DNA of 64,000 nucleotides from Eukaryota sp. TZLM1-RC. Lineage: Eukaryota; Protista; Metamonada: BaSk clade. Both the position numbers and the translations under genes were made by a program. The notes under the pieces are model-generated. The model made no database searches, was not told where the DNA came from, and saw nothing but the letters and a program-made list of their open reading frames with translations. Shown here piece by piece: positions 1,311 through 60,688 of the stretch. The stretch is taken from assembly GCA_040285825.1 (NCBI GenBank), contig JAUPSS010000004.1:3080550-3144549 (forward strand), written 5' to 3'. The first letter of the stretch is position 1; every line of letters starts with the position of its first letter.

Positions 1311-2149
1311 AATGAAAATGTGATCACCATGTTTTATGATAGAAAGTCGATATGTGAGTTGAGCTCCCAAAAAGAAGGCATCTTGAGAACCATAACAAAT
1401 GTCAATAATTCAAATCGGCGTAGGGAGAAGATTTGTCATAACCATTCTCATGCCTGGTGATATTAAAGATTTTACAGATGAAGAAACAGTCCATAACAAT
1501 TTCTTAATCCACAATCTGCCGTGAATCAATTGGGAGTGAATGAAGCACATGGCTGTAAATAGTCAGTATGATTCAGATGAGATCCAATATGTAGGTATCA
1601 TCAAAAAAAATCGTGAACCACTGATACACTACCAGCAGCAGTTACAAGACTTTCAGGAATTGGAGACGTATGGTGATGTAATTTGGCGCTATTTTTCAGA
1701 AGTTTACACAAGTGAATAAGAAGAGTGGGAGACTTTGGTAACAGTAACAGTTGAAAGGTAAATCGAGCTGATGCTGCTGAACACTAATAGAGATACATCG
1801 GATAGTCATTTGATATCTTTGTGAAAATTTGCAACCATTTTGAAATTACAATTTGCAATCAGCATGTCAGACATTTCTCAGCGAGATTCTCCCGACACTT
1901 CACATTCTTTTAACATCACGCAGCAAAAGGAGAAAAAGGATAACGATGTAACGGACTCAATTGTGACCTCCTCTTTCAACTTCTTCTTCACAGAACTGCA
2001 GAGTACTTCCTCCCGATCTCCTCAGTCCGGAACAGTAATCCTGCTTTACAAGAATAAACGGAAAGTCAGAGTCTCGATTTTCTATCGGAATCGTCGTTCT
2101 GTTTTTTCTGTGGGTGTAGAGTATTACACTTTTTTCAGTCATCTTGTGA

Positions 2150-2560
2150 GTCATGATATGTGTGCTATTGAATTAGCCGTGCTGATATTCACCTTGGATA
2201 TGGGATGTTCTTGATTGTGTTTTGTTTTGAATTGTTATTTTGATGTTTTTGATTTTGTTGATTTCTTTGTTTTAGGTACTTGCACTTTGAATATGAGATG
2301 TTTTTCTTGTTTATGTATTTTTTTTTGAATTTTTATCTTGCTGTAATTGAGTTTGTTGTTTTTTGTGATTTAGCTACTTGTACTGTAGATATGGAATGTT
2401 GTTTTTGTTTGTGTTTTGTTTTATATTGTTGTTATTTTGATGTTTTTGATTTTGTGGATTTTTTTGGTTTAGATACTTGTACTTTAGATAAAGGATGTTG
2501 TGTCTTAAATTGTTATTTTGATAATATTGAGTTTGATGATTATGTTAATAATTTATGTTT
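2150..2560. repeat. Imperfect tandem repeat, about 4 units of roughly 90-100 bp, T/G-rich
   Basis: Recurrent ttgttattttgat...gattttgt.gattt..tacttg.act.t.gata.gg.atgt blocks. The minus strand reads as K/Q/S-rich low-complexity peptide with stops. Confidence 0.6.
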
Positions 2561-2767
2561 TGAATCCTGTAGCTGTCAACATTTTCTATCAACAAACCCA
2601 TTTACTGTTGATTAACAACGAGATTTTGAAACAAATCCTGGTCCCAGAAAAAGAAGATCCATTTGTAAATCAACTATTTCATCAAAAATTATTACCAACA
2701 AACATCAAAGTGTAAGCGGAAAGAACAACAAAATGTACTAAAGAAACAAATTTGTGTTGAAAATACA

Positions 2768-5700
2768 ATGTTGAAAATCGAGAACAGAAAAATTTTGACA
2801 AAAGAACCATTGAAATTGAGTATGGTCAAAAAAATTAAGCCAAGTCTCAGTGGCTTCAAGCCTGATCCTTTGATTCAATTCAAATCAACGACAACAAATC
2901 AAAATCTTCTTGTGGTTATGTGCATTGATCTTGAAACATATCAGGATGGTTATCTTAACCAAAATCATGATGACCATTTTCTCCCTCCTGGTGAAGTTGT
3001 CAACAAAAAGAGAAAAGAGGGTGCAAAACTTTCGAAAAAGAAAACTGATGAGCAAATGGATGAGTGGATTTCCAATCAAAAAGTGTTTTTAATTTCGATT
3101 GTTATTGGCAGATTTGACCAACACAATTTCTTTTTAAAAAGCAAATATTCGTTATTATTGAAGATGAGTTCCCAAATTAGATCTTTACCTGAAATTAATA
3201 TGAATGTTCATGCAGAATTATTCTTCAACGAGGAAACTTTGCTTCGTAGATTTTCAAACCTTATTGACAATTGTCAACCACATTGTTTATTGAATCACAA
3301 TTTAATCAAATTTGATTTACAAGTATTGAAAAATCGAGTCAATGAATTTAATTTATCATTTCACACTGTTGCAAATGATCCAATGCACTCAATCAACTTT
3401 CACCAAAATGGAGAAAAATTGTCATCAGGGAAAATGGCTTTAATCTTTTAGATACTCCGGTTTTTGCCAAGAAATTTTATAAAAATCCTCTACGGACATG
3501 GATTAGGTAATCTGGCATATAAAAAGGTTAAGAAAAGAAAACCAAAATTCATCAGGAATTTTCCCATATTTTGCCAATTGATTTCTTTAGCTAATCCTCC
3601 TTTGATACAAAATTCTATTCAATATGGACTTCATGATTGTGTCCTCTGCCTGAAACTTTCCTGCTGTTTTAGGAAGACAAATTCATTTTATCATCTTATA
3701 AAACCATTCATGCAACCGTCAACTCAATGGTTAAACATTCAAATGTGATACTCAAATTGAGAAAAACTGCTGTAAAATTTCAACAGTTGCGAATTCATAC
3801 TAAATGTTGCCTGAAGGTGTATTGACAGTCCACATTTGAAGGTAATTTACTATTACCTCAAACATTTGCCAAATTATACGAATCATTAATGGCCAGAATT
3901 CGTTATATTTCAGCTGAGTATTATGGGCAAGAAATGGTGAAACCAAAAAGTGCATTTCCACAGGACTTTGAAGACTTTGTTTATGGTGAAGGAGTTTATA
4001 CTTTAAGAACTACCTTTGAGCAACATAAGTTAAACAAAACATTGAGTTATCTTGATCATTTGAGACAGAAGCCTGAACAGTTTCCACGATTTCCAACTGA
4101 TGGTTTCAGTATACCACCTGAGTAAATGGCCCCAGTATTGTTTGAAAATAATTTGAAATTAAATTATGAAAAACATATTAATCGATTTATCAATGTTTAT
4201 TTTGACAAAACAGATGTGGAAAATATGTTAGCAGAAATGCACAAACCGGGTAAATACTCAACGCCATTATCTACAATTATTTCACTATATAGATTCAGGC
4301 TTCGTCAGTACAAAAACTTGTGTTTAGTTGAAGATAGAAATTGTTCTTTGTTTCATCATCCAGAAAATATTTCAGACCTTCTTAATGATGAATTTTTCTA
4401 TTTATGTGAACAACATGATATAAGAAATAATGAACTTATAGACATCTTTGAGGGTCTTATTGAGCCATTCACTTGTCAAATTGAGAATTTGGTCACTGAC
4501 GAGAATTTAGTTGATAACATATTTCCAGTGGATATACATTTTCTTGCAGACGCTGTTGAAAAAGATCATCAAGTATTCCTAAAACCAGCAATTACAATTG
4601 CCCAATATATTTCCAGTAGGGAGAAAACCTTATCAAATTTCTCCTGTTTCAACCACGGTAGGTCCTGGATATTTTCCTATTGATACAAGAACAATATGGA
4701 CAATTGTTAAACAAACAATAATTGATGATTTATCATCAACACAGATGCTGAAAATGTACAATACACAGGCCCAAATTACGAAATTCAAACCACCTGAGCA
4801 ATTTGACTTTTGGTCTAATATTCTAGATTTAAACCAACCAATGTTCAAACAGAAGAGCTATAAATTCAACAACATTATCCACACAAATGGATTTAATATT
4901 GCAGTAGAATTTGTTCGTCAGGATTTATGAGGTCAGAAATGTAAGCCAAACAACAAGGCCAGTGTTTCTGATTTATATATTAATGACGTTGATTTTGATG
5001 CTTTTCAAGACAAACGAATTGTTGTTTGTGATCCTGGAAAACGTGATTTATTGTATTTTGGGAGTAAAAAAACGGATCAAGAATTAGCATGGTTCCTGAA
5101 CATTAAACTGAACAGCAAAGTAATAGTTGGGTGATGAATCAAGACAAGAAATTCAAATGGTTGAGAATGACTCAGATGTCTTGGTCTTTGAAAAGTAGGA
5201 TGAATGAAAAACAAAAACGATGGGTGATAAAGTATACTGAGGTAGATTACGACAGGAACCAAATGATAAAATGTAACGAAATGACAATTGAAGATGCAAA
5301 CACCGAATTGTCCGTTTTTGCTGCCAATTCAGCAACTTTTATAGATTTTTCCAACTTTGTCGTTGTCAAACTTCAGCAAGCTTATTTGAAAATTGACTTT
5401 TACAGTCTTGACTTGTGGAGCATTCATAAGATGCAAGCTTTTATTCACAAGCAAAAGACTGAAAGTTGGTTGTTAAAAAAACTTGTTCAGCAGTTTGGCA
5501 ATCCAAAAGACACTTTAATACTAATGGGTCATTATGGTAAAAAAAGTTCCAAGAATTTGAAACAACAGAGACCTACTCCAGGCAGTGGATGGACTCAATT
5601 TCTGAAAATGAATGGATTTGAAGTATTGATGATTAATGAAGCTTTCAATTCGGCAAAATGTCCTGTTTGCTTTGAAAAGGTTGCTACGTCTTTTGAGATT

Positions 5701-5917
5701 AACAGATCCCAGATTCTATAGAAGAGAAAAGACTCCTGTTACTACATGTCATGGTTGATTAGCTTGTAACAGTGACAGATGCAAACTCAGTAAGAAAGGC
5801 TCAACAAAGCTTTTCAATAGAAATAAGCTGGCTTGTCTGAATATGTTTGCAATTGCTGAAACCAGAATGAGTGGCAACGAAAGGCCTCAGTACCTGTGTA
5901 GTAGATTGTTTTGGTAA
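2768..5917 (+). pseudogene. Fanzor1 (TnpB-like RuvC) with N-terminal PolB-type DEDDy 3'-5' exonuclease domain, copy 1 (frameshifts and stops)
   Basis: ExoI DLET 2927-2938, ExoII HNLIKFD 3296-3316, ExoIII YGLHD 3623-3637. Fanzor N-term YKTIHATVNSMVKH from 3697; FNNIIHTNG; RuvC-I VCDPGKRDLLY (DPG 5030-5038); QFGNPKDTLILMG; RuvC-II INE (5638-5640); CPVC...CHG*LACNSDRC zinc finger; RuvC-III FNRNKLACLN (5816-5824); RPQYL C-terminus. Confidence 0.85.
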
Positions 5918-5990
5918 TTGTTCTACCCATGTGTGTGGGGAATTCCATTTTCAAACTCTCAACTCCCCCAATCTATATTGTCTTCATTAA

Positions 5991-7022
5991 ATGTTGACCA
6001 TAACTCAACTGGATGCGCTCTATGACTGGCAGCATCAGTCTTTTTCTTCCTCCGAAAGCTCTCTCCTCGAGTCGTTACATCATTTACATTCTTTTATAAC
6101 TCATGAGTCTTTGTTTTCAAGCAATGAGGAGCTAGACGACGTCAGTACCTCCTCTCTCCCTTATTTGCTTGTTCCTTTCTTCCTTGGTATAGCTACCTCC
6201 AACTCATCATCCTTATCCCGCCTACAAGCCATTTCACACGGCAAGTCTTACCTCAACACCTTCACTACTCTTGCCTATAACTACAATATCCTCTCTGAAT
6301 CTCTCATCTCATCATTTTCTTTGCTCTCCGATGACCTGAAACCAAAAGAGGTAGACGCTTATGAGAAGAGGAAGTTTCTGGTGCTGAGGCAGAAGAGAAT
6401 TAAGGAACTGCTTTCCCTTATTGAGCCAATTAATGTAAATACATCTGATGAAGAAAACATTCGCCAGCATTACATCATTAAAATAGAATTAGCAGTTGTA
6501 GTTACGTTCAAAACCTTGGAATTTTTGGTTCAGGAAGAAAATATGCTAAAAGAAGTCGAAAAAATGAAAAGTGAAGGTCGAGATGTGGTTTCGGAATATC
6601 AATCAGAAAAGGCCAAAATGTTTAGAAAACCTTTGACCAAATTGACAAGAGAAGACTTGCAAAAGAAATCTTTAGATTTAGGTCAAAATAGTAGGTCAAA
6701 TCTCCCTCTTAGTCACGTCATGGGTCAAGGCAGGTCAAGGCAGGAGGTCAATAATCAAGTTTTTGATGTCAGTCACCGGTTATTTACTATTAGTTCAGAA
6801 GAAGCAGATCAAATGGAAGCTGAAAGAATATTTAATAGAATGGAAAAAGAAGAAAAAGAGAAAATTCAACAAGAAATTCATCAGCGGCAACTACAGAATC
6901 AATCATTTTACATCGATTCGACTATTGATTCGACTGATTTTCAAACTTACAAAGATCGTTATTGGGATGATTGGAAGGATGCAAATCCCAAAGGGACCGG
7001 TAACAGTTTGAGGGGGAAATAA
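5991..7022 (+). CDS. TAP42: TAP42/IGBP1 (alpha4) PP2A-associated protein
   Basis: LFSSNEELDDVSTSSLPYLLVPF N-terminal motif and C-terminal WDDWKDANPKGTGN. Confidence 0.9.
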   Translation: MLTITQLDALYDWQHQSFSSSESSLLESLHHLHSFITHESLFSSNEELDDVSTSSLPYLLVPFFLGIATSNSSSLSRLQAISHGKSYLNTFTTLAYNYNILSESLISSFSLLSDDLKPKEVDAYEKRKFLVLRQKRIKELLSLIEPINVNTSDEENIRQHYIIKIELAVVVTFKTLEFLVQEENMLKEVEKMKSEGRDVVSEYQSEKAKMFRKPLTKLTREDLQKKSLDLGQNSRSNLPLSHVMGQGRSRQEVNNQVFDVSHRLFTISSEEADQMEAERIFNRMEKEEKEKIQQEIHQRQLQNQSFYIDSTIDSTDFQTYKDRYWDDWKDANPKGTGNSLRGK

Positions 7023-15642: not shown

Positions 15643-18600
15643 ATGGAAAACGATAGTCGGACCCAAAAAGAGGGAGTCAACATTAAAATCAACCCCTCCG
15701 TCAAAAATGGTAAGACAAGAACCTTCTACTCAGTCAGGAAAGCGCAGAAAAATTACCTCAAAGGCCACTAGAAAACCAAAACTATGCCTAAAAGGCACAT
15801 ATGGGTGATTCAACTTCTGTACAAATTAATACAGAACAAAATGAAATATTCAAGAAGTTCATTAAAAATTTACCATCAAATCTATCTGCGAGACAGAAAC
15901 GACGTAAACTTAATCTTCATGTGACTCAAAGGGACTTACAGTCAGCTGAGGAAATATTGCTAAAATATTCTAACGATGGTGTAATTTCTAATTCCTCATC
16001 GATACCTCGAGTTGATGTAAAGACCCCATAAATTGATCTTTTTTTAATTGATCTTTAGGCCAAAAATTTCAAGGCCAGTGGGAAAAACTAAAGAAAAACC
16101 AAAAAAGGAAAAACTGTCTATAAAAAACACATAATAAAAATGAACATTATTGCTCAACTAAAAGATACGACAATTACAAAATCAATTCATTTTAATTGAT
16201 ATTGAAACTAAAACAAACAATCAACTTTCCCCTAAAACATTACTCAAAAGCTGAATGAAATGAGGAAGACAGAGGCTGAAGACTTGAGAAATCTGACTGA
16301 TGAAGAAAAAGTACAGGGGGTCAATAACCAAGAAGTTTTCATAATTTCTCGTGTTTTTGGGTTCTTTAAAAAAGATGATTTTTATATACAAGAAAATTTT
16401 ATTGCTTCGTGTGCAATATAACCTGAAGGGACGTTGAAAATCCCCCATCATTGTAAAAAGATCCATTTTTTTGATACAGAAAATAATTTATTATCATTTT
16501 TCGTTCAATTTTTAATTGATCACAAAAAAAGATGTTTGGACGTGTTGATATATTCAAAAATTTGATGTTCCAAAATAATTCAACCGAAGATATTTTACCA
16601 TTTTTATCCTCTTTTGGCAGCAGATTTCCTGTAATTTTAATGGTTTTACCATCTGTGATTTATTCTTTATTTAAAAAAATTTATAGCATCAAAATCGAAT
16701 AAGTCCTTGCGGTCTCTGAGTTGGTTCTTATTAAATGAGTCTAAAAGGTATCTTCATGATACATTTGAAAACTTTTTACCAATTGATTGTGTCAGAAGAA
16801 GACCCCAAGATACAATTAATTTATTATTCAAAGATAGTGTTTTTGCCTTAAAACGATTTTTACCGTTTCAATGAAACAAAGTGCTTCAACCCATTTTTGT
16901 AACACACAAAACCACATTGAACTCTATTGTCAAGCATAGAGGATTGGAACTTTTGTTGAATTACTATGCTCAGTTGGTTCACAAATTGAAAATTTGCACG
17001 TCATATTGACTTAAATTATTTCTTTTAAATTTAACTGAAAATGACCAAGATTTTCCTGTTGCAACTCGAATAGTAGAACAAATTCAAATGTTGCTCAGTA
17101 AAATTTCTGCCACTGAACACAATATTGAATTCAATGAGGTTGTAGACCTACGCGAATTTATGAGGACTTGAAAAATTTTGTTGAAAATAGTTGTAAGCAG
17201 TTAATGGAAACAAATGGTGGTATTTCTTTTTTTCCCATTAATCATGGTGCTAGATTGAGGTCTTTTATCGCCAAATTATTAAAACGAATTTAGTTGTTAA
17301 TATTCAAATGACATATGCTCAATATATTGAAAAATTTGTGAATCTATATTTTGAGAAAATGAAAGTTGAAGAAGAGTTGATCCAAAACGAAAAATCTGTG
17401 TTTTGTTGGAGGTTACCTCAAGTCAACAATCTATTTCTGCAGAGGAATCGAAACAATTTTCCGACTACTGACGATCAAATTGATAATTTCATTAACTTTC
17501 TGATGATGAAATCTTATACGCAGACAATGAAAATTGTTTGAATCAATCAGCAAAATTTGTTCTTTTAGACAGTACTCATTTCAAAATTGGTAGGTTATTA
17601 AAGGATGAAAATTGGATGAATTTAATTTTCCCTGGGTCTATTTTAGTAAACAATTTAAGAAATGAAAAGAAGGCTAGTTAAGTTAAATCATTACTTTTCA
17701 CTGTGCGAAAACATTCCCAATCTTTTAGCAAATAAGCTATCAAAATTAATATTTGTACAGAAAAAGCTGAGAAAAAACACTGAAGGCCATTTCAATTGTT
17801 CGAAATGAAAATTCTGGATTTTTCAAAGTTGATAGCCAAAGATTCTGGGGTGTTTTGCGTCCTTTTTTACAGATGATGAAATTACAGCTAAAAATGCTAA
17901 TTGAAAGTGCAATTCAATGACTGACAGTCAACGTATGGATCCAGAACAACTGAATTTATTTTGGTCATATTTTTTTGAATTTAATAGACCATTTACTAAA
18001 AGAGGCTACAAATTTAACAACGGCATTAAAACTGATGGTTTTGCAACCTGTATTGAGCTTGCAATAGAGGATTGTATTGGTATGTCCCTCAAGCTTGATA
18101 GTGCAAAATTTGCAACCACTGAGAACTATTTGGATAATTTGGTTGTTGAAAATCTATCAACAAAATACAAAGTACATATTGACCCTGGTAAGTGATACAT
18201 TTTATTTTTGAAGTTACAAAAGATTCAAACTGAATGCAGAAAACCAATTAAACCGAGATAAACAATAGGAGTAGCTGAGATTAACAGAATTGGAATGGTC
18301 AAGGGTGACGAGAGTTCACCAAAAACTCAGAAAATTGAAAAACAATGAGTATATTTTACAGAATGGAATCACAGTGGAACAAACAGAAGCTACATTATCA
18401 AAAGAATCATCAAAATCTTCCATTTACAATAATTTCTATTCTTATGTTTCTTCCAAGCTTATAAACATGACATTCACATTAATGATATGACCCATTCAAA
18501 AAATACAAAGATATGTCCATCATCAGAAAACAGAGACTAAGTTATTGAAAAGAATGGCTGAAAAGCAATGGAAGCCAGAAGACACTGTCCTAATGTTTGG

Positions 18601-18779
18601 TGGCAATGGTAATAAGAGACAGAAATCAAAGCATCATCAATCAAGTAAAGGAGTTGGATGGAGAAATTTCTTTAAGAGAAATGGTTATACAGTATGTTTA
18701 GTTGATGAAAAAAAACGTCTTCAAAGTGTCCAACTTGTTATAACCCAGTTGATGTGTTTCTTGATGTTGAGAATCCTAG
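15643..18779 (+). pseudogene. Exonuclease-Fanzor1 fusion, copy 2 (divergent family), 5' part up to the Gypsy insertion; start approximate
   Basis: ExoI LIDIET (DIET 16198-16209); LTDEEKVQGVNNQEVFIISRVFG aligns with copy 1 KTDEQMDEWISNQKVFLISIVIG; FFDTENNLL; KFD 16558-16566; Fanzor N-term FVTHKTTLNSIVKH from 16896; FNNGIKTDG; HIDPGK (DPG 18181-18189); LVDE..TSSKCPTC..ENP. Confidence 0.82.
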
Positions 18780-18858
18780 TGTTGCCTAAAGTCTATTGCA
18801 GTAAAGAAAAGTCTGATTTATTTTCTATTCATATTATATAAGCCTTAGGGCGCCAACA
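18780..18858 (-). repeat. 3' LTR (79 bp)
   Basis: TGTTG...CAACA termini; 2 mismatches to 25875..25953. Confidence 0.95.
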
Positions 18859-18988: not shown

Positions 18989-21900
18989 TTAGCTCCTCTT
19001 CCTAATTCTATTACTGCGTCTAGGCTTCTTAGAAGGCGTAGACTCATTGGAGGTACTTTGTCGTCGACTAGTGGTACGTTTTCCAATTTTCTTGTTATCC
19101 TTACTAAATAACTTAGAAGCTTCTGAATGTTTAACCGAATGGAGTGGCTCTTCTGTTGTCTCACCGCCAAACCATTGAACAGTACAGAAACTACCTGAAT
19201 CAGAGTGGTATTCTGAGAGGATTTTCTCTATAACGTGTTTTTCGGAATCGCCTGCAGCGACTGCCTTGAGGAACTCAATGTCCTGTGGATTTTCTGCGTT
19301 ATAGGTTTTGCAATCTTTCTTGGCAGCTTTTAATTCTGTGCCAGTAGTAAGATTCTTCAATAATAAAGTGGATTTGGAAGGAAGGTCAATAACTAAAAAT
19401 GGTCCATTCCAAGATCCATGCAATTTATTATTTTGCTTGGTTTTACGTAAGACGTAGTCACCAATATTGAATGCTAAAAAACACGAATTAGTATTATCTA
19501 CTGAAGACGGAGTATTTAATGTTTGGTGACGCTCTGCTTTTTCCCTTTTTTCTTGTAGACGAGTGTTTTTCATTTTGATGTCATCTAATAAAGGGATATT
19601 AGTTTCAAATTTGGATAAATTTCCTAATATATTAGCAGGGGCTGTTCTTGGACTAATCGAAGAACCGAACATGAGTTCGTATGGGGTAAAACCAGTTTTT
19701 CTGCTTTTAGTAGAATTTATTAATAGTTGGGATATAGGTGCGTATGTAGACCAATTTCCGTAATCATTGAAATCTATTAATAGTTTCCTTAAGCATTGAA
19801 GAACGTCTCTATGTTTACGTTCTACAAGTCCATTACTTTCTGAATAGTGGGGAATTGAGTTACTCATCTCAATCGCTAATCTGTTACACACTATTTTGAA
19901 AGTCTCATTGGCGAACTCAGGTCCATTATCACTATGAATTAACATAGGTATGCCGAAGATAGCGCAAACATTCCAAATTAAAGCATCTGCGGTTTCTAAG
20001 GCATTGAGTTCTTTTAGAGGTACTAAGATTGTATATCCAGTAAAAGAGTCTACAAATACTAATAGATATTTATGTCCTTCGTTGTCAGAATTTAGGGGTC
20101 CAATTGTATCGACGTTTAATCTGGCAAAAGGACGATCTGCCCATAAAGATCCTGTGGAAGGTGTTTTTGATCTTTTAACTGGAGCCGTTTTTTGACAAGT
20201 TGGGCATCTTTTGACATGATCAATAAGGTCCTTTCTCATATTGGGCCAGTAAAAATCGCTTTTGGATAGTTTGTGTAAACTATCGTTTTTGCTAGGGTGA
20301 CCAGATTGAACCAAACCATGTATTAATAGAAGTGCCTGTTTTCTGAGGCTCTTTGGAATCAAAATTTTGTTTTTATTATTTTTCCAAATTTGAGTACTTT
20401 CATCTAGAATTGCATTTTCAAATAACGAGTCGTTGTTGTTTTTGGCTATTTGTTGTTCAGATCTTATCTTAGAGAACCAAGAAGAAAAAATAGGTAGGTC
20501 TTGGTGTCTACATAGAGATGAGATTGTTGGGATGTCTTCAAGATCCGAATCAGAATCATCGTCTAGTGGAGGTATCTCGTAATTTGAAAGTAAAGTATCT
20601 GGTATATTTATACTACAAATAGAAGGAGCTTCCTCGTTTTGATCCAAATCAATATTCCTCGATAACATATCTGCCCAATGGTTGTCTTCACCAGGTTCGT
20701 GGACTATGTCAAAGTCGAATTCAGATAGTATCGGCAGCCATCTCTTTACAATTCTATTTTTCTCTGGGGCTGTAGCCAGGAATGCAATGTTTTTATGATC
20801 TGTGAAAATTGTTAAATGTCTAGTTAACAAGTAGCTTTCTAAACAACTTTCAGTTAAAATCAAAAGTATTGCATATAATTCTTTTTGTAATGTGGACCAT
20901 TTTCTTTGTGTTTCTGTAAGTAATCTACTATAGAATGACAAAGGTTTTACTTTCCTTTTATTTAGCGGGGTTCCTGCAGGGGAGTAGGGTTCAATTTCTT
21001 GCCAAATAACACCTCCTACTGCTACATCTGAAGCGTCAGTACTTATCAATACTCGCTTGCCCGGAGCTGGTAATTCAAGGGGCATGTGGTTTACTATTAA
21101 GTCTTTTATTTGTTTTAAGTAATCGTCATGCTTGCTAGTCCATTTAATTATTCTGGGTTTTCCTTTAATTAGCTCGTTAATTGGAGCAATTAATTCAGAA
21201 ATACCTGGAAGCCAATCTCTAATATAATTGATGGATCCTACCAATGAGCGAACTTCTTTCACTGTTTTTGGTCTAGGGATTCTCATCAAGGCTTCGATTT
21301 TTTTCTTACTAATAAATCTAGTTTTATCCTGGAAGGTACTTCCTAAAATGTCGATAGGGTGTTTTGATGTTACGAATTTACATTTGCGTAAGCCTATATT
21401 TACACGTCTATTTATGGCGCATTGGAGGACTCTTTGTAATCTCTTATAAAATTCTTCGAATGTCGTTCCAACTATTATGATATCGTCAATGTATATAAAA
21501 ACGCCGTCTATTTGGAAAATTTCCATCATTACGTTTTGAAAAACTGCAGGGATGTTCTTTAATCCGAAGCAAGCTCTTTTAAACATGATTGACCTTCCAG
21601 GAATTGAGATTGATGTTTTCTCAATATCCTTATCAGCTACATTCATCTGCCAGAAAGCTTTTGGTAAATCAAGCGTGGCGATGTAATTGGCTCTACTCAA
21701 CAATTCTAAAATATCACTAATCCTAGGTAGATTAGGCTCTACTGAAATCGTATGGGCATTAACTCCATCTTTACCACTAAAGTCTCCAGTTAACCTGGGT
21801 TTCTTGCCGTCAGGATATATAACTAAGACAATAGGAGAGCTGAATTTATAATTAGATTCAACTGCGTAACCCATTTTGATCAGTTCATCAAATATTTTGT

Positions 21901-22279
21901 TTGCTATTTCCATTTTGCTGGGATTTAACCGTCTAGCAGGCTTGTGTACTATAGCATTCTCATCTCTAAAGGGAATTGTTAGAGGATTACAATCGATCCC
22001 TTTTCTATTAGGAGTTTCACTAAAAACATCGCTGAATAATTTTAGTAGACTCGTTAATTTTAATTTATTATTACTATCATCTAAATTTATACCACATCCA
22101 GATCTTGCTAATTGCTCCTCAAAATCAGAAGGACTTGGTGATTGGTTATCTAAGTTCCCAATCGAATGTTGAGCGATCCTAGAGTCGAATTTTGATTCTG
22201 CATTTAGCAAAGTGCGGTGTTCTTTGTCTAATCTAATGAAAAGACCATCATCCGTCTGAAGCCCAAGTGCTTTTAACAT
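18989..22279 (-). CDS. Gypsy pol: RT, RNase H, integrase, chromodomain-like tail
   Basis: LDLPKAFWQ, FGLKNIP, YIDD, TDASD, ELYAI, TDHKN, H..GH..C..C, DTIG..HSDNG..E, GSWNGPF, VIEKIL..VQWFG..TEEP. Confidence 0.93.
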   Translation of the reverse strand: MLKALGLQTDDGLFIRLDKEHRTLLNAESKFDSRIAQHSIGNLDNQSPSPSDFEEQLARSGCGINLDDSNNKLKLTSLLKLFSDVFSETPNRKGIDCNPLTIPFRDENAIVHKPARRLNPSKMEIANKIFDELIKMGYAVESNYKFSSPIVLVIYPDGKKPRLTGDFSGKDGVNAHTISVEPNLPRISDILELLSRANYIATLDLPKAFWQMNVADKDIEKTSISIPGRSIMFKRACFGLKNIPAVFQNVMMEIFQIDGVFIYIDDIIIVGTTFEEFYKRLQRVLQCAINRRVNIGLRKCKFVTSKHPIDILGSTFQDKTRFISKKKIEALMRIPRPKTVKEVRSLVGSINYIRDWLPGISELIAPINELIKGKPRIIKWTSKHDDYLKQIKDLIVNHMPLELPAPGKRVLISTDASDVAVGGVIWQEIEPYSPAGTPLNKRKVKPLSFYSRLLTETQRKWSTLQKELYAILLILTESCLESYLLTRHLTIFTDHKNIAFLATAPEKNRIVKRWLPILSEFDFDIVHEPGEDNHWADMLSRNIDLDQNEEAPSICSINIPDTLLSNYEIPPLDDDSDSDLEDIPTISSLCRHQDLPIFSSWFSKIRSEQQIAKNNNDSLFENAILDESTQIWKNNKNKILIPKSLRKQALLLIHGLVQSGHPSKNDSLHKLSKSDFYWPNMRKDLIDHVKRCPTCQKTAPVKRSKTPSTGSLWADRPFARLNVDTIGPLNSDNEGHKYLLVFVDSFTGYTILVPLKELNALETADALIWNVCAIFGIPMLIHSDNGPEFANETFKIVCNRLAIEMSNSIPHYSESNGLVERKHRDVLQCLRKLLIDFNDYGNWSTYAPISQLLINSTKSRKTGFTPYELMFGSSISPRTAPANILGNLSKFETNIPLLDDIKMKNTRLQEKREKAERHQTLNTPSSVDNTNSCFLAFNIGDYVLRKTKQNNKLHGSWNGPFLVIDLPSKSTLLLKNLTTGTELKAAKKDCKTYNAENPQDIEFLKAVAAGDSEKHVIEKILSEYHSDSGSFCTVQWFGGETTEEPLHSVKHSEASKLFSKDNKKIGKRTTSRRQSTSNESTPSKKPRRSNRIRKRS

Positions 22280-22294
22280 GTCTGTCCCTATTAA

Positions 22295-25204
22295 TTATTT
22301 GTTCGAACCCGGGATTATGGGAAGAGTATGTTTATAATGAACTTGTTGCGCAATGCTTCCTACGTTGAACGACAGAATACCAGTTGCACTCCCTAGCGAT
22401 TTTGTGGATACGTTATTAGCTGGTAAGAACTTAATGGTATCCTTGCTATTGATTGACATATGGCATTGTTCAGCTAAATCTGCAGTAATAACTGAACAAA
22501 ACGCAGCCGAATCTATAGTCGCAATCATTTTAATATCATTTATTGATATCTCCAGTCTTAGAAATGGAGAACGCTGGGACCTGATGTGGTTTTCACTAAC
22601 CGTAGAATTAATATCAAAAATACTATTGATATCAGAGCTGGATTGGTGAATTTGTAGAGGAATTAAAAAATTTTGTTGAGCTGTTGGAAAGTTGTTGACT
22701 GGGTTTCCTAAATCGGTTGTTGATTGATTGTCATTGATTGCGTTGATGTGTACCCGATTAGGTAAGTTGCCTGTCCTGCTGTTCCGGTTGCTGTTGTTGA
22801 TCCGTCTGTGAGGAACCGTACTCGAACGGGTCGGTTTTGACTCAGTAGGGGATGCGTTTGATGATATATCCTCTGTAGTGTTGATGTTATACATAGGTCT
22901 GTACTGACCTCTTCCTTTATGACCTTTAAAACGGCCTCCACGGCCTCTAAATTTGAATCTATGTACACATCTACCACAGCCACCTCGGCCCCTTTCTACA
23001 CTGCCTCTACTAGCAGGCGCCTCCTGTTCTTCTAATCTGAATCTTTCTTCTTTGGGAACTCTGCTTCTAGCACAACGAGGATCTTTGCATTCGAATACAG
23101 TGTGGCCAACAGGATTGTTACCTTCGACGTTGCTGCAGAATGTACAGAATTTTGACCCTTCTCGTTCATGCTTTTCAGGGATGTATTTGTGTTGAGGGGT
23201 TCCTCTTGACTTTCCACCTGATCGTCTTGCTCGTTTTGATGGAGCCTGGGCTGATGGTGTTGCTCCTCTTGAGTAAGTTCTCATCGCCGTGAGTCCCAAA
23301 GGAATATCTTCTTCGTTAGCCCTGTTCCTTAGTACATCCATTGTGGGCTTGTTTCCTGCTGTGTAACACCAAGCGAGGAAATGTCTTCTCGTTGTCGATA
23401 TCAAATCGAGTAGAGTTGTTCTGTTCGGTGAGTCCCACAAGGATTCCCTAGTCCATACTGGGAGGAGTTCGCTCGATATAGCAAAGTTGTCCAAACCCAT
23501 AAGAAAGTACTCGGCTATTAGAGCGGGAGATATGGTTATCAGCCCACTGCTTCCTCTAATTAAATCGGGGATGGTTAGGTCGGTCATGTAGGTGGTCATT
23601 CTCAAGACGTCTCCAAAATCTTCTACATAACGACCAAACTCGTTGTCAGCCTCATGCCTATTGTGGATTTTTCTCCAGTTGATTCTAGGCTTCATTAGAG
23701 CTGTACAAGCCTCATGATATGATGTGAATTGTGTTCTTTTTAACAGAAATACCATGACGTCGGCGTCGGTATAGTCAACACCGAGTAAACCTTGACTCTG
23801 CCATCTGGATAGAAGGCTAGGGTCAATCTTGCTGGATATTCCTGTAGGGCAAGTGCTCATCATCATGCTCCTAAATAAATCATAATGGTGGATTGGGGGT
23901 CCGAGCTTATCTGTTATAGCTGGGTCAATCCTTACCAAAGGCTGTGTTGTATCCCTGGTGATCTCGTCGCGTATGTGTTTGGGGAGATCTTTAATCCTAT
24001 CTTGGGTTATTTCTGCTTGGCCTTCTCCAAATAACTGGGTAGCTATCATAAAGGCTCTGGTCCAATCTGATTGACCTGGGGCTTCAAAGCTTCTATTAGC
24101 TATCTTTCGCCCGTATTTATCCCAAGTTTGATATTTTAAAAGAAAAGCTATGATAGACATTTTGTTGATAGGGTCGTCAGCGGATAATCGAGGTCTTTTA
24201 TAGTCGATATCCTTAGACCGTGGATCAATCTGTCTATGAAGGCTACTAGCTATGCTCATGTCAATAGCTCTTCTTGAGGATTGTAGGTCCTCAATACGCA
24301 TAGATCTGTCGGAAGAAGAGTTTCTTACTGAGGGTTGAGGAGGAGCCGTTTCTCCAACGACTGGCCCGTTCAACTCTATGTCTTCTCCGATTTCACATTC
24401 TATAGGTTGAGAGGAAGTTGGTTCTTCCTGAGGAGCAACGTCTTGTCTAGTTACAGGTTCCGGGACGTTCACTGTTGGAACGTGTTCGGGTATGCTGTCA
24501 ATAGAGCAGACCTGTATTGGTTGGCTTTTTTCAGAAATAATGGGGGCTACAACAGGCAGTTTGGGAAGGTGGAGAGATGTGGATGGATCTCCCGTTACCC
24601 ATTGTCTAAACTCTCGTTGTTTCGTGAACAAGTTACCATGTTGTTGGATGTAGTTGTTAGGACGGCTCCTATACGTGGATACAGCTGATCGTTCCGTATG
24701 AATGTTATTTAAAGCGTCTGCATCAAACCAGGGTGTTACTGGTTCAAGCTTGTCTTGTTCACTACTATCCTCCTGCTCCATAAATTCCCTAAAATATGTG
24801 GGAGCACCCTCTGTCAGCTCCGTGTAATTATGGATTTCCGTATCAAAGTTAGGGTCAAACCAGGCAGGCAATTTGGATTGTAGGATGTCTTCTGAGTCGG
24901 TCCTACTTCTCTGCTCGATGGAGAGAAACCTTATTCTCCTGCCGTGTTGATCTAGGAAGAAGGCCTTCCAATCCAATCTATCTTTGATGGGAAGAGACAT
25001 CATTTCATTGATTCTCTTGTCCATTCCAGAGATTCTGGGGCGGCGCTCTGCGTTACGCCCGAATGTCTCTCTACTCAGTTTATCAAGTGCCTTTATAAGT
25101 TCATTCCTTTCATTGAGGGGATTTCCAATACCTTTTGGGTATCCCCAATCATTCCGAGGGTCTGGAAACCAACGTTTCTGCCTCTTTTTTGAATGTGACT
25201 CCAT
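22295..25204 (-). CDS. Gypsy gag-protease (zinc knuckle, aspartic protease IDSAA)
   Basis: CTFC..GHTVFEC knuckle, RGG tract, MIATIDSAA. In frame with pol through a single TAA at 22295-22297 (NK*LIGTDM). Confidence 0.85.
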   Translation of the reverse strand: MESHSKKRQKRWFPDPRNDWGYPKGIGNPLNERNELIKALDKLSRETFGRNAERRPRISGMDKRINEMMSLPIKDRLDWKAFFLDQHGRRIRFLSIEQRSRTDSEDILQSKLPAWFDPNFDTEIHNYTELTEGAPTYFREFMEQEDSSEQDKLEPVTPWFDADALNNIHTERSAVSTYRSRPNNYIQQHGNLFTKQREFRQWVTGDPSTSLHLPKLPVVAPIISEKSQPIQVCSIDSIPEHVPTVNVPEPVTRQDVAPQEEPTSSQPIECEIGEDIELNGPVVGETAPPQPSVRNSSSDRSMRIEDLQSSRRAIDMSIASSLHRQIDPRSKDIDYKRPRLSADDPINKMSIIAFLLKYQTWDKYGRKIANRSFEAPGQSDWTRAFMIATQLFGEGQAEITQDRIKDLPKHIRDEITRDTTQPLVRIDPAITDKLGPPIHHYDLFRSMMMSTCPTGISSKIDPSLLSRWQSQGLLGVDYTDADVMVFLLKRTQFTSYHEACTALMKPRINWRKIHNRHEADNEFGRYVEDFGDVLRMTTYMTDLTIPDLIRGSSGLITISPALIAEYFLMGLDNFAISSELLPVWTRESLWDSPNRTTLLDLISTTRRHFLAWCYTAGNKPTMDVLRNRANEEDIPLGLTAMRTYSRGATPSAQAPSKRARRSGGKSRGTPQHKYIPEKHEREGSKFCTFCSNVEGNNPVGHTVFECKDPRCARSRVPKEERFRLEEQEAPASRGSVERGRGGCGRCVHRFKFRGRGGRFKGHKGRGQYRPMYNINTTEDISSNASPTESKPTRSSTVPHRRINNSNRNSRTGNLPNRVHINAINDNQSTTDLGNPVNNFPTAQQNFLIPLQIHQSSSDINSIFDINSTVSENHIRSQRSPFLRLEISINDIKMIATIDSAAFCSVITADLAEQCHMSINSKDTIKFLPANNVSTKSLGSATGILSFNVGSIAQQVHYKHTLPIIPGSNK

Positions 25205-25953: not shown

Positions 25954-26152
25954 CTAGGCCATGGAGAAATGCCCAACTGTGAAATGCCATGCTTATTTCA
26001 GATGTCGATCTGATGTGTGTAGAGAAGATTGTGATGGAAAGGATAAGATATATATATGGAATCGTAACAAGTTAGCATGTATCAACATCAATGCAATTGT
26101 AGATTATTTTGTAGAGGATAGTATTGGTGATAGGCCTCCATATTTGTCTTAA
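25954..26152 (+). pseudogene. Exonuclease-Fanzor1 copy 2, 3' part (second half of zinc finger plus RuvC-III)
   Basis: Removing the Gypsy restores ENPRPWR, then KCHAYFRCRSDVC...IWNRNKLACININ...RPPYLS*. NRN at 26060-26068. Confidence 0.85.
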
Positions 26153-26949
26153 GCTAGAGCCTTTTACTACAGTGATTCTGTGGCATTTTTGGATTTTTCC
26201 ACTGATAAAACAATTGGCACATCAAAACTATTGAGGAAATTATTGAAAAAGTAATCCATTGATGGCATTAGAAGGTTTTTCGTTTTTGAAAAAAGAGCGC
26301 GTGGAAAGCTTGTCGTCAGAGTAAACTTACTTAAATGTTTTATCCTTTCAAATTCTCCAATTTCAAGAATAGTTGATGGAATGGATATTCAATCCAAGTT
26401 ATATTCATTTGATGTTATTCGTCATCTAGTTTCACTTTGAGGTAATAATTATAAAATTTCCAAACAGTTATTTGGAAAATTGACCAAATGATGGAATTGA
26501 ATGTAATGTACATAAACACATTAAATTAACTATTAAGATTCTGTTTCAATTCAAATTTCAATAATATATTTCGCTCTATTAAATATCTTATCTCTAGATC
26601 TGTAGCTTAAAAGTTTAATGAATTGCGTGCTAGAGTATTGTTTCAACTGCTAGGGTGTAAAATGTGCCAGTTTCCCAATCATCCTTATCACAATTAGGGT
26701 TGACTAACGTCTATTGTTGCTTCGTGTGCTTTTATTAATGGATGTAGAAATGTCATGTTTGAGTTTTCCGACAGAATTGTAGATTGGAAACATATAGTAG
26801 TGACAACTCAAAATTCAACTATTTTTGCCTTAACAGAAGAAATTTCGAAAATTTCGATAAATTGAAAGAACCGAAAAATAAATGGATTCGATGCTTCCCT
26901 AATAACTTTATGCCAATAATCATGAAACAAATTATTTGAATTCAATATA

Positions 26950-27660
26950 CTCCCTTCGAACATTACAAAAACGAATGACTAAAGTGTATGAAGATGATAT
27001 TTTTAAAATATATGCAGCTCGGCTGTCGTACATCAACATCTCCGCTCATTGTTATAAGAAAGTGGTGTATGTGAGAATAAGTCATGAGACTCATCACTAT
27101 TAGTCACCATTGTGCCACCAAGGTTGGGGCTATTTGCTAATAATGAAGGTTTTGTAACAATAATAACATGATAATAGAGGTTATATTTACTGCGATTGGA
27201 TTAATAACTCCGAAGTTGTTGTTGATTTTGTCTCCTGTAATGTTGCAAATGACACTGTGGTTCAAAGAAGGAATTTTAATCTTGTGAATGCTCTTAAATA
27301 GAAAGCGAATGAAAAACAATGAAAATATGACCATTATTTTGAAGAAGCCAATACTGATAAAAACAGACCACTTTTTTATTGCTTTTCAATTTTCTATAAA
27401 CGAAAGACTATCAGAAAAAGCAGTTGAATGATTTCCAAAGATTGGTTCAAAAGAAAACAATGAAGAGATTTGATGTCTTTTTGTGGTGGTCACGAATTCA
27501 ATTTGCAATAATTAAGAGGTCACCTAGGTTCTTCCATCAAATAAGAGAAGTAATGGTCAGAAATCAAGCAGATCAGGATTTTGTAGAGGAAATCTTGGTT
27601 TATTCAATTTAGTCCCATTAGATCTGATTTAATTTTACTAAGTGATGTAGTTCAATAAAA
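26950..27660 (+). mobile_element. Degenerate CRE-like RLE element related to family A
   Basis: QKKTMKRFDVFLWWSRIQFAII..QADQDFVEEIL; homologous to 59733..60680. Confidence 0.75.
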
Positions 27661-31263: not shown

Positions 31264-31374
31264 TGGCTTCAACAACGCTGTTCAGATATGAAGAAAAGTA
31301 ACTGGTTGAGATACTATACTAGTTTTTACGGCCTGTGGGAAATTCCCATTAGAACACGATCAATTTTCGTGTGG

Positions 31375-32022
31375 AATAATTACAAAAACTATCTACTAGA
31401 TAGGTACTGAGGCCTTTCATTACCACTCATTCTAGCTTCAGCAATTGTAAACATATTCAGACAAGCCAGCTTATTTCTATTGAAAAGCTTTGTTGAGCCT
31501 TTGTTAGTACAAATTTGTTACGAACAAATTCTATTGCAATATTGTATCAATCTGTGTGGATAATGTTGTTGAATTTATAGCTCTTCTGTTTGAGCATTGG
31601 TTTGTTTTAAATCTAGAGTATTAGACCAAAAGTCAAATTGCTGAGGTGGTTTGAATTTCGTAATTTGGGCTAATGCATTGGACATTTTCAGCGTCTGTGT
31701 AGATGATAAATCATCAGTTATTGTTTGTTTAACAATTGTCCATATTGTTCTTGTATCAATGGGAAAATATTCAGGGCCTACAGTGGTTGAAACAGGAGAA
31801 ATATGATAAGGTTTTTCTCTCTACTGGAGATATATTGGACAATTGTAATTGCTGGTTTTAGGAATATTTAAGGATCTGTTTCCACAGCGTCTGCAAGAAA
31901 ATGTATATTCACTGGAAATATGTTATCAACTAAATTCTCGTCATTGACCAAATTCTCAATTTGACAAGTAAATGGCTCAATAAGACCTTCAAATATGTCT
32001 CTAAGTTCATTATTTCTTATAT
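31375..32022 (-). pseudogene. Fanzor1 copy 3: internally deleted derivative of the copy-1 family
   Basis: 31519..32022 matches about 4418..4920 and 31375..31510 matches about 5790..5925. RuvC-I, RuvC-II and the zinc finger are deleted. KLFNRNKLACLNM retained (NRN 31473-31481). Confidence 0.88.
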
Positions 32023-40659: not shown

Positions 40660-43420
40660 TAACCAAACGAAGATTTGGAATGTGTGCTACTAATGAACCT
40701 TTTGTAACAAAAATGAGATTATATTTGAACATACTGTGAAACGTAATTGTATTTTTGATGTGCTTCTTCATGATTTTCCTGAACTTTCTGCATATTTTTA
40801 TTTATTTTATGGAAAAAAATCAGACTTAATTTTTGACTCCTTTACCCTTGAATCTTCTTCTGGTGTGAAACAAGGTGATCCTCTTGGCCCTTTGCTGTTT
40901 TGTTTGGCTATTCATAATATTATTAAAATGACACAACAAGATTTCCCTGATTTGCGTATTGTTGCCTATATGGATGACATTTCTATTATTGGTTCTTTTG
41001 AAAGCATTTCTAGGGTCTCTGAAAACATTGCGGCGAAATACTAGGAAATTGGATTAGCTTTGAACCCATCTAAATGTCTCTTGATTGGTAGAGAAAAACA
41101 ATCTTTGATGATTGGTGGAGCTCAGATTCCTTTTATCAATTATGACCAACAAGCTTTTAAGTTTCTTGGATGTTGGCTTGGCAATTTGGATGAAATTTAT
41201 TCCCAGTTAAACAATTTATTGGAGAAGTTTGACAAGGATCTTAGTTTTATTGCTGAATGTGACATTGAGAAACACATCAAATTTTTTATTTTATAAATTT
41301 GTTATTCTGGAAAATTCACTCATATTTTAAGGTCAACTCCCCCTTCGGTATCTCTCAATTTTTGCAGATCTTTTAACAAACTTCGAGTCAAATTTTTTCT
41401 TTTTATTAGAAGTAAATGAATCTTTAATTCGAAGTCATGTATTTTGTTCAGCAGATTTGGGTGGCATTGGATTCACCAAATCTTCGATTCTGTGTAAAGC
41501 AGCATTTTTGGGAGGTGGTAAAAATTTTGTTTTGAATTTTTCCAAAGGTTCCCTTTTGATGTTCATCTGATCAATGGTGAATCAAATTTTTATTTGAATC
41601 AACTTCAAATCGAATTAGATAATTTGCCTAGTGATATCTGGATTCAGTGTTTTCCTCAAAATGTTCAAGAAATTCCCACCCGATCACTTCCAAATTTACG
41701 TTTTTGCTTGAAAAAGCTTCAGCACCATCTGGTTAAATTATATGAAGGCTTGGATTATGAAGTAAGACTTGGCTTGGCCAAAACTAAAAATCCCGCTTTC
41801 GGTAATTTTTTAAAGGATATTCGTGATAGTTCAGCTGCTGCTTTAGTAACTCAAGTTCCCTCTGTTTATGGACTTTTGTTAAAAGACAATGAATGGCTTC
41901 TAAACATGCGTTTTCGTTGTTTTCTGTGGCCAAACAATTTGCCCAATCATTTAACCTGTAAATGTGGTAAACCTCTTTTGTTTACTCATCTTTTGAACTG
42001 TAAACATTTCATTACGTTTAGAAGCAAAGTGCATAATAACGTCAGGGACCAAATTTATGTAATGTGCAAATCATATCGAGTAGATTCCTTTTTAGAACCG
42101 CTGTTATCAAAATTAATTCTTGATGATCCCAATATTGATAGTACGCGTTACAACAGAGCTTCTATGGGTCTGACTAGAGGTAATCTAGTTGTTCCTGGTT
42201 TAAATGGTAGTTTTACTATTTTGGACGCCATGTCTATTGACCCTTGTAATTCCTCTAACGAACATTTCATTAACTCGGATGTAAATAATCCTCTTCTTGC
42301 AGGCGAAAAATATAAAATTGCTAAATATGCGAAACCCATTTCCTCGGTTAATGAAAATTCTCATGCCCAATATAATTTATGTCCATTTGTTTTTTCTTTG
42401 CTTGGATCTCTAGGTAAGGCTGCTATGGCTTTCCTTGAGGATTTTGTTGTAGTTGTAAAGGAAAGAACTGGAAGAATTTTCAATCGTGTTTACTGGCAAA
42501 ACAGGATTGTATTTTCTATTTATAAGGGAATGGTAACACTAATTTCTGATTCACTATCTTCTTTTGGGAAATTTTCTGAATCTTTAGCGATTAATTGTTT
42601 TGATGTAGGGGAGGCAGGTTTTGAGGATGTGGAGTTTTAATTGTGTATTTCATATTTGTTGTTGAATAAAAATAAATAAGGTAAAAAAATATTTGAACAT
42701 CCCCATCAACCAATTATTATCAAAAGAAAAATGTATTTGTTCGAATTCACCTCTGCTCACTTTGCGCCATGCTCTGAATTGCTCTAAATTGATAACTTAT
42801 CGTTCTTCATTACATGATGCTGTTAGAGACACTGTTTTCAATATGGCACAAACTGCAAGGATATCGTTTATCAAAGAGCCCCTGCTGAAGAAAACACTTT
42901 CTCTGAATAATTTTGGTTCTGATGATAGAGGTGATGTATACTGTGATTGGATTGATAATTCTGAAGCTATTGTTGACTTTGTCTAATGTAATGTTGCAAA
43001 TGATACTTTGGTTCACAGAAGAAAACTTAACTCTGTAGGTGTTCTTGAATTTAAAGTTACAGAAAAACATACAAAATATGACAAAGATGTCGACGAGGCT
43101 AATGCTGATAGAAATACACCACTAGTTTTTATTGATTTCCCATTTTCGATCAACTGAAGACTATCAGTAGAAGCAGAAACTTTTTTGAATGACTTCCAAA
43201 AAATGGTTCAAGAAAAAATAATGAAAAGATTTGATTTTTTTATGGCTCTCTCGGATTCAATTTGCCATTATTAATTGATTGCCTTGGTTTTTCAATCGAA
43301 TTACAGAAGCTTTAGCTAGACAGTAAGCAAATCAAGATTTTGTAGAGGAATTCTTAATTAAATGATTTTCGTCCCATTAGTTATGAATTAATTTTATGAA
43401 GTTTGCATGTTCAATAAATA
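40660..43420 (+). mobile_element. 5'-truncated family A element (40660..40732 plus 42689..43420) interrupted by family B
   Basis: RRFGMCATNEPFVTKMRLYLN continues as NIPINQLLSKEKCIC after the insertion. Confidence 0.85.
40733..42688 (+). mobile_element. 5'-truncated family B CRE-like element (RT C-half plus RLE) nested in family A
   Basis: GVKQGDPLGPLLFCL, YMDD, RLE ORF 41594..42640, A-rich tail. TSD ATATTTGAACAT at 40721-40732 and 42689-42700. Confidence 0.92.
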
Positions 43421-59732: not shown

Positions 59733-60688
59733 GAACATTACAGAAACCATTGACTGGAATGTATGAAAATGATCTTTATAATAATATATGCAGCTCGGCT
59801 GTTTTAAATCAAGATATTCACTCATTGTTTTTGGAAAAAGGGTGTTTGTGAAAATAAGTCATCAGATTCTTCACTTTTTGTAACCATTGTAACCACGAAG
59901 ATTTGGATTGTGTGCTACTAATGATGCATCTGTAACAAAAATGAGATTATATTTGAATATCCCCATTAATCAATTATTATCAAAAGAAGAATGTATTTGT
60001 TCGAATTCACCTCTGCTCACTTTGCATCATGCTCTGAATTGCTCTAAATTGATAACTTATCATTCTTCATTACATGATGCTGTTAGAGACACTGTTTCCA
60101 ATATGGCACAAACTGTAAGAATATCGTGTATCAAAGAGCCCCTGCTGAAGGAAACACTTTCTCTGAATAATTTTGGTTCTGATGATAGAGGTGATGTATA
60201 CTGTGATTGGATTGATAATTCTGAAGCTATTGTTGACTTTGTCTCATGTAATGCTGCAAATAGTACCTTGGTTCACAGAAGAAAACTGAATCCTGTGACT
60301 GCTCTTGATTTTAAAGCAAAAGAGAAACATAGAAAATATGATAAAGATATTGAAGAGGCTAATGCCGATAGAAATACACAGCTGGTTTTTATTGCTTTCC
60401 CATTTTCGATAAATGGAAGATTATCAGATGAAGCAGAAACTTTTTTGAATGACTTCCAAAAAATGATGGAAGAAAAAACAATGAAAAGATTTGATATTTT
60501 TTTATGGCGTTCACGGATTCAATTTGCCATTATTAATAGATTACCTCGGTTTTTCAATCGAATAAGAGAAGCTTTAGCTAGACAGCAAGCAGATCAAGAT
60601 TTTGTAGAGGAAATCTTGGCTCAATGATAGTCGTCCCATTAGTTGCGAGTTAATTTAATAAAGTGTGCAAATTCAATAAATACAATTA
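59733..60688 (+). mobile_element. 5'-truncated family A element (ORF 59908..60627)
   Basis: Near-identical to 1..845. Confidence 0.88.

Follow-up and report, generated by a model that had tools for sequence, protein, structure and literature searches.

A Skoliomonas gene family that very likely joins a PolB-type exonuclease to Fanzor1 in one protein

The locus described here lies in a window of 64,000 nucleotides (the whole stretch of DNA analysed) from Eukaryota sp. TZLM1-RC, which we take to be Skoliomonas, the free-living metamonads described in PMC11316075. It is a decayed copy of a multi-copy mobile gene family in which a Fanzor1 nuclease and a PolB-type exonuclease are, very likely, natural parts of the same protein. 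The element consists of one long ORF, comprising a variable leader, a 2A-like motif, optional Ulp1 protease(s), a basic linker, a PolB-type DEDDy exonuclease and Fanzor1, followed by a 3' hairpin RNA candidate.

Exonuclease and Fanzor1 domains in one chain

Three sister loci in the window's own genome share 85–87% identity with the window copy. In L004 and L005, both 87% identical to it, the junction between Exo III and Fanzor is in frame, and relative to both the window lacks one base at approximately position 3661. The L004 protein runs from Exo I through Exo III to the Fanzor start without a break, and L005 retains a single 850-codon frame from Exo I to beyond RuvC-I. Nine annotated proteins of the TZLM3-RCL genome combine Exo I, II and III with RuvC-I, II and III in one chain, and unbroken ORFs are present on the DNA at four loci: L002 is a 1312-codon open frame, and direct translation of L007, L009 and L011 gives products of 940, 1571 and 1905 aa, respectively. 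KAL0227444.1, KAL0211769.1 and KAL0213088.1 are among the intact natural copies. A GEM-RC1 protein has the identical domain order, which is constant in five subfamilies and three genomes. Moreover, a short-read contig spans the junction as DNA. Some database gene models include predicted small introns.

The first-pass annotation had proposed one ancestral exonuclease-Fanzor chain of approximately 1000 aa, inferred across frameshifts. This held, intact relatives measuring 940–960 aa from Exo I to the end, and the fusion is now supported by the in-frame L004 and L005 junctions and the intact TZLM3-RCL ORFs. The check for intact single-ORF copies, set as a refutation test, was run and did not refute the proposal, since single-ORF fusions are present in TZLM3-RCL. 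The profile and fold searches that had been suggested supported both a DEDDy PolB exonuclease and Fanzor1.

A search with the exonuclease piece identified close relatives only in Skoliomonas assemblies. Outside Skoliomonas, no fusion turned up in word-index searches, in a 1.84-billion scan that used the exonuclease piece, in viral and metagenome scans or in the Atlas, within their limited length range and sensitivity; the 25 metagenome matches had no Fanzor nearby, and most carried palm motifs. Separately, one gene model (P0018, KAL0221217.1; annotation only) fuses the N-terminus of a DEAH-type helicase to an exonuclease-Fanzor that is intact apart from its 5' truncation. Directly upstream of a 5'-truncated exonuclease-Fanzor copy there is also a Fanzor/TnpB-like ORF of another kind, which has the canonical RD end (L004:6687-7592).

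The exonuclease assignment rests on both sequence and fold. The window piece 2768-3448 alone matched Pfam DNA_pol_B_exo1 (E 2e-9, above the cut-off), and the best sequence match of the domain was yeast Pol delta (E 1e-11). The exonuclease-only model, with a pLDDT of 83, matched PolB proofreading domains with Z scores of 14–15.7 over approximately 180 residues. The Exo I, II and III residues are present within this PolB exonuclease fold, so that the DEDDy criteria are met; 3'-5' DNase activity is inferred. Like the proofreading domains of family B polymerases (Pol delta, alpha and epsilon; ASFV and herpes polymerases; PF03104), the domain has Exo I DxE, Exo II NxxxFD and Exo III YxxxD motifs. 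Unlike those polymerases, it lacks palm, fingers and thumb, shares only 16–25% identity with them and sits on a long branch. Palm motifs, the criterion for a family B DNA polymerase, Polinton or casposon, were absent from all six frames of window positions 2000-6100 and from the intact relatives, as had been claimed for the window copy. In the tree, the family exonucleases form one clade against real polymerases, and the long branch leaves the donor unresolved.

Although the subfamilies are only 28–55% alike, all of them retain the four acidic exonuclease residues and the Tyr. One near-intact copy lacks Exo I by in-frame deletion and another has a Glu-to-Lys change in Exo I; these may be decay. 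At L010:7066, an in-frame deletion of ~1.25 kb takes out the linker and Exo I and leaves Fanzor intact, a natural exonuclease-less variant. Accessory exonucleases are known in some LTR retrotransposon polyproteins (PMC6338049), as are DEDDh nucleases in P and piggyBac elements (PMC3627910); unlike these, the Skoliomonas domain is of the DEDDy PolB type and is joined to a putatively RNA-guided nuclease.

For the Fanzor1 part, the family profile matched SpuFz1 (8GKH, E 8.8e-50), PpFz1 (9CF0, E 1.7e-47) and GtFz1 (9CER, E 3e-42) over WED/REC and RuvC, and its alignment to SpuFz1 and PpFz1 starts at position 246-247, immediately after the exonuclease. The full-length AlphaFold model was weak (pLDDT 51, pTM 0.41) and does not show the domain geometry; a Foldseek search with this low-confidence model returned SpuFz1, PpFz1 or GtFz1 for all of its top seven matches. 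The RuvC-I DPG (as defined in PMC10711439) is found at 5030 and in all relatives, and the RuvC-II Glu lies six residues before the first CxxC (INEAF at 5632, CPVC at 5659) with the same spacing in relatives. RuvC-III has Asn in all subfamilies, the canonical Asp being absent; the motif is NRN and not NRD, a family trait and not decay. Death of the RuvC site through this Asp-to-Asn change was considered and rejected, since GtFz1 is active with Asn: its D-E-N site cuts DNA, and the D606N change raises the activity of SpuFz1 above that of the wild type (PMC11423790).

The family is Fanzor1 by each sequence test run, and RNA-guided, TAM-dependent cleavage is inferred from homology. It shares with SpuFz1, PpFz1 and GtFz1 the DPG RuvC-I, the Glu-zinc finger spacing and, by prediction from sequence, a structured 3' end past the stop codon, and with GtFz1 also the RuvC-III Asn and, at the locus level, the lack of inverted repeats and transposase. 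Unlike known Fanzor1s, it has a 240-aa exonuclease directly at its N-terminus, a 2A-like motif and optional Ulp1 proteases.

The two domains also appear to share a history. The dN/dS values for exonuclease and Fanzor in three subfamilies were 0.08/0.08 (subfamily C), 0.46/0.27 and 0.37/0.24, on small counts, and the exonuclease and Fanzor trees, both small and long-branched and with one sister protein read with X at its stop, each separate subfamilies B, C and E from A and D. One old fusion passed on as a unit is the simplest reading of these ratios and matching trees.

The window copy and neighbouring relics

All features of the window copy lie on the forward strand. Its leader (2083-2621) contains a 98-bp tandem repeat (2206-2506), has no Pfam match and corresponds to an open frame into the 2A motif in sister L005. 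A degenerate 2A-like motif (DFETNPGP, 2622-2645) follows, which in sisters reads GDVEANPGP with the class A features GDVE and NPGP (PMC12338488). The basic linker (2646-2915) opens with RKRR, possibly a nuclear localisation signal by inference. The exonuclease domain (2915-3690) carries DLET (Exo I) at 2927, HNLIKFD (Exo II) at 3296 and YGLHD (Exo III) at 3623-3637. Fanzor1 (3691-5914) begins with YKTIH at 3697, 60 nt past YGLHD, and comprises WED/REC, RuvC-I (DPGK, 5030), the rearranged RuvC-II Glu in INEAF (5632-5646), a zinc finger (5659-5782, with CPVC at 5659 and the second Cys pair at 5747-5782) and the RuvC-III Asn (5816-5833). The element's right end, with the candidate omega-RNA scaffold, occupies 5900-5947 and carries a 13-nt deletion at 5929 in the middle hairpin; short-read cover ends at 5935. 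A TAP42-like gene follows the copy.

Every motif cited in the first-pass annotation was found at its place. Its start at 2768 failed, since the 2A-like motif lies upstream and homology to a sister copy extends back to 2083; it had also overlooked the 2A-like motif, the RuvC-III Asn and the 3' RNA structure.

The window copy is a true pseudogene. Intact relatives align to 2915-5899 in order but over several frames, and the copy contains six in-frame stops, one in the exonuclease region (3670) and five in Fanzor1 (3823, 4123, 4928, 5104 and 5756), plus about eight to ten frame-shifting indels: near 2612-2616 and 2693, in the exonuclease near 3382, 3475, 3531, 3582 and 3661, and in Fanzor1 near 4623, 5087 and 5690. 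Assembly error as the sole source of these breaks is unlikely, given that the six stops arose by substitution and the copy has diverged by 13%. For single indels, long-read error remains possible, and the short-read runs left the unique flank uncovered. Window pieces were searched separately, neither joined nor made into a consensus, and intact natural relatives were used instead.

The window holds further copies. A second one, of the same subfamily and 92% identical, is 5'-truncated and internally deleted with its right end intact (31336-32022, reverse strand). A third, distant and decayed, lies on the forward strand in two parts: a 5' part at 15659-18838 (Exo I 16192, Exo III 16827, DPGK 18181) and a 3' part at 25958-26201 (RuvC-III 26060, hairpin end), parted by a Ty3/gypsy-like element. 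Such elements, with long intact ORFs, interrupt Fanzor copies in two genomes (window 18989-25204, reverse strand, and L003:11404-17454), each within the RuvC half. A 52-nt scrap at 980-1031, 88% identical to the coding region of the third copy (18309-18360), is possibly a fourth relic; it sits in otherwise unassigned DNA between a retroelement and the leader. This retroelement, the 3' end of a non-LTR element at 1-850, repeats at 27117-27659, 42632-43418 and 59892-60680 (RVT_1 gene in L001). Similar non-LTR elements are found just upstream of exonuclease-Fanzor copies L002, L004, L005 and L006, perhaps through mere abundance.

Anatomy of the element and its mobility class

Subfamilies A, B, C and D have a 2A-like motif ahead of the enzyme; in P0001 this motif is in frame with Exo I. 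Sisters and relatives meet the class A consensus GDVExNPGP (PMC12338488), which is degenerate in the window; peptide-bond skipping is inferred. No locus showed more than one such motif, and in none did it lie between exonuclease and Fanzor. In subfamilies B and C it is followed by one or two Ulp1 (C48) domains, the C match being below the Pfam cut-off. Leaders vary between near-identical copies, with 5' modules swapped; where copies have a 5' end in common, an ATG follows 2, 45 or 59 nt later.

The 3' ends are sharp: all copies stop 55–80 nt past the stop codon in a terminal hairpin with outer pairs TGRRA and TYYCA, and the flanks diverge immediately past this scaffold in 12/12 copies. The middle and terminal stems keep their pairing and layout with different sequences in subfamilies A, B and C, whose hairpins have folding z scores of -1.8, -2.8 and -3.2 to -5.4. 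RNAalifold on an automatic alignment gave no consensus fold, the stems being misaligned, and the window 3' end, which has lost 13 nt of the middle stem, folds no better than shuffles. The position and shape of the 3' hairpin are as expected of an omega-RNA, an inference from sequence alone in the absence of RNA data. Carry-over of guides was considered for two subfamily B pairs that share 16–24 nt past the apparent end, and was rejected: these bases pair back into a longer terminal hairpin (z -3.2 to -5.4) and are therefore part of the scaffold, not guide.

Right ends often lie 40–70 nt before a same-strand called gene (window 5947-5991, L004:11066-11129, L005:12209-12279, L007:10876-10917), so that the guide would be promoter or 5' UTR sequence. 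At L006:13656-13851, a 46-bp stretch (terminal hairpin end and first flank bases) is found again 150 nt downstream, beyond a spacer that is A/T-rich and internally repetitive; the arrangement resembles a repair scar.

In the four copies with defined 5' ends, no TIR >9 bp, no TSD >5 bp and nothing above chance was detected, and no poly(A) tail was found at the copies' 3' ends. The earlier statement that no transposase lies nearby held, the gene lists of 12 loci being without a linked DDE transposase. The criteria for cut-and-paste DDE elements (transposase, TIRs, TSD) and for non-LTR retrotransposons or retrocopies (own reverse transcriptase, poly(A), TSD) are thus not met, and action or mobilisation in trans is not excluded in either case. 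A Helitron, suggested by a PIF1 helicase beside L011, was rejected: there is no Rep match, PIF1 occurs at one copy only, and the ends are TYYCA-like without CTRR. In the region concerned (L011:535-5870, reverse strand), which faces an intact copy head to head, a split PIF1 helicase is clustered with a leucine-rich gene and with another gene whose His/Asp/Cys motifs look protease-like without support from Pfam.

A cut-trim-copy proposal, its rivals and its meaning

As the most likely reading, we propose that the guided cut leaves a 3' end which the exonuclease trims, favouring copy-in repair. This, like the trimming or resecting role suggested earlier, is inference, and we put it at about even odds. 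If it behaves like known Fanzors, the protein would bind an omega-RNA that combines the 3' scaffold with the flanking 15–20 nt, and the RNP would cut matching DNA beside a TAM through its D-E-N site; guided cutting by Fanzor falls 14–21 nt from the TAM (PMC10432273). In a cut empty allele, the 3' tail of the TAM-side end would find no match in the occupied allele, and copying could start only after its removal. The tethered PolB exonuclease would remove this tail in cis and spoil simple re-ligation, host repair would then copy the element into the empty allele, and the 2A motif would release the enzyme from any upstream frame where the element lands. During break repair in yeast, the proofreading activity of Pol delta shortens invading 3' ends by up to ~40 nt, and Rad1-Rad10 clears non-matching tails (PMC9477423). 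Cut-and-copy is a model discussed for both TnpB and Fanzor (PMC10432273).

The proposal is backed by the in-frame fusion, the kept catalytic residues, dN/dS values below 0.5, the matching trees, the active D-E-N site of GtFz1 and the Pol delta precedent. Against it, activity, expression and small-RNA data are lacking, and no empty allele, TAM or homing event has been seen. Homing would account for persistence at a locus but not for arrival at new ones, and the analysis found no mobilising enzyme. The poor full-length model, the copies without Exo I or with its Glu-to-Lys change, and the small long-branched trees weigh on the same side.

Among the rivals, self-mobilisation survives best and remains possible. 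Cutting and trimming would here make recombinogenic ends at new sites, where host end-joining or a trans reverse transcriptase would paste a copy. The absence of transposase, TIR, TSD (four copies with defined 5' ends) and poly(A), the sharp 3' ends, the swapped 5' modules, the 5' ends 2–59 nt before an ATG and the plentiful non-LTR elements of the window speak for it; 2A motifs also occur in non-LTR retrotransposons. However, the sequence just past the scaffold differs among all 12 copies, which means that guides do not travel with the element, and a transposase elsewhere in the genome, which was not covered as a whole, could act in trans. A bolder reading, likewise possible but less than likely, is a transposase-free eukaryotic element that spreads by its own RNA-guided cut-and-trim enzyme, is pasted by host repair or a borrowed reverse transcriptase, and is 2A-expressed from any landing frame.

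It is unlikely that the exonuclease works on RNA or side products (omega-RNA 3' trimming, released single strands) and not on the cut target end. Guide 3' ends require maturation, and DEDD folds include RNases; however, every sequence and fold match is to the proofreading domain of a DNA polymerase, and RNA maturation in ordinary Fanzor1s does without such a domain (PMC11423790, PMC10432273). Equally doubtful is a mutagenic or defensive eraser that would cut and trim deletions into rival elements or invading DNA, to the gain of host or element, with no copy-in. Engineered Cas9-exonuclease fusions do raise editing efficiency (TREX2-SpCas9, PMC13370227) and the genome is rich in other mobile elements, but the guides are unrelated flanks without convincing second-site matches among the loci compared, and many decaying dispersed copies suit a selfish element. 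An artefact or passenger, whether from neighbours brought together by chance, from joined gene models or from capture of an inactive polymerase fragment, is suggested by the fragmented window copy and the predicted small introns of some models. This reading is very unlikely: four loci have unbroken ORFs, five subfamilies and three genomes share the domain order, the catalytic residues are invariant, dN/dS is <0.5 and the domain trees match, adjacency by chance being already contradicted.

Returning to the fusion itself, its novelty, suggested in the first-pass annotation, stands within the literature searched: no natural Fanzor-exonuclease fusion appears in the titles or abstracts examined, with subscription papers mostly outside this scope, and the word 'exonuclease' is absent from the main texts of Saito 2023, Yoon 2023, Jiang 2023 and Bao and Jurka 2013. 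The new part is the exonuclease module on an otherwise known Fanzor1 type, a 'cut-and-trim' layout present in no paper found. Like engineered Cas9-exonuclease fusions such as TREX2-SpCas9 (PMC13370227), it tethers a guided cutter to a 3'-5' exonuclease, TREX2 belonging to the 3'-5' DEDD exonuclease class; unlike them, the Skoliomonas fusion is natural, eukaryotic, Fanzor-based and kept by selection. With its D-E-N site and 55–80-nt candidate scaffold, it might serve as a compact editor that alters the outcome of repair, its activity being inferred. The idea is directly testable, since intact natural copies exist, each having its own 3' RNA candidate. Fanzors are known as single-nuclease proteins whose role is still open, and a natural fusion maintained by selection points to end processing after the guided cut as one part of it.
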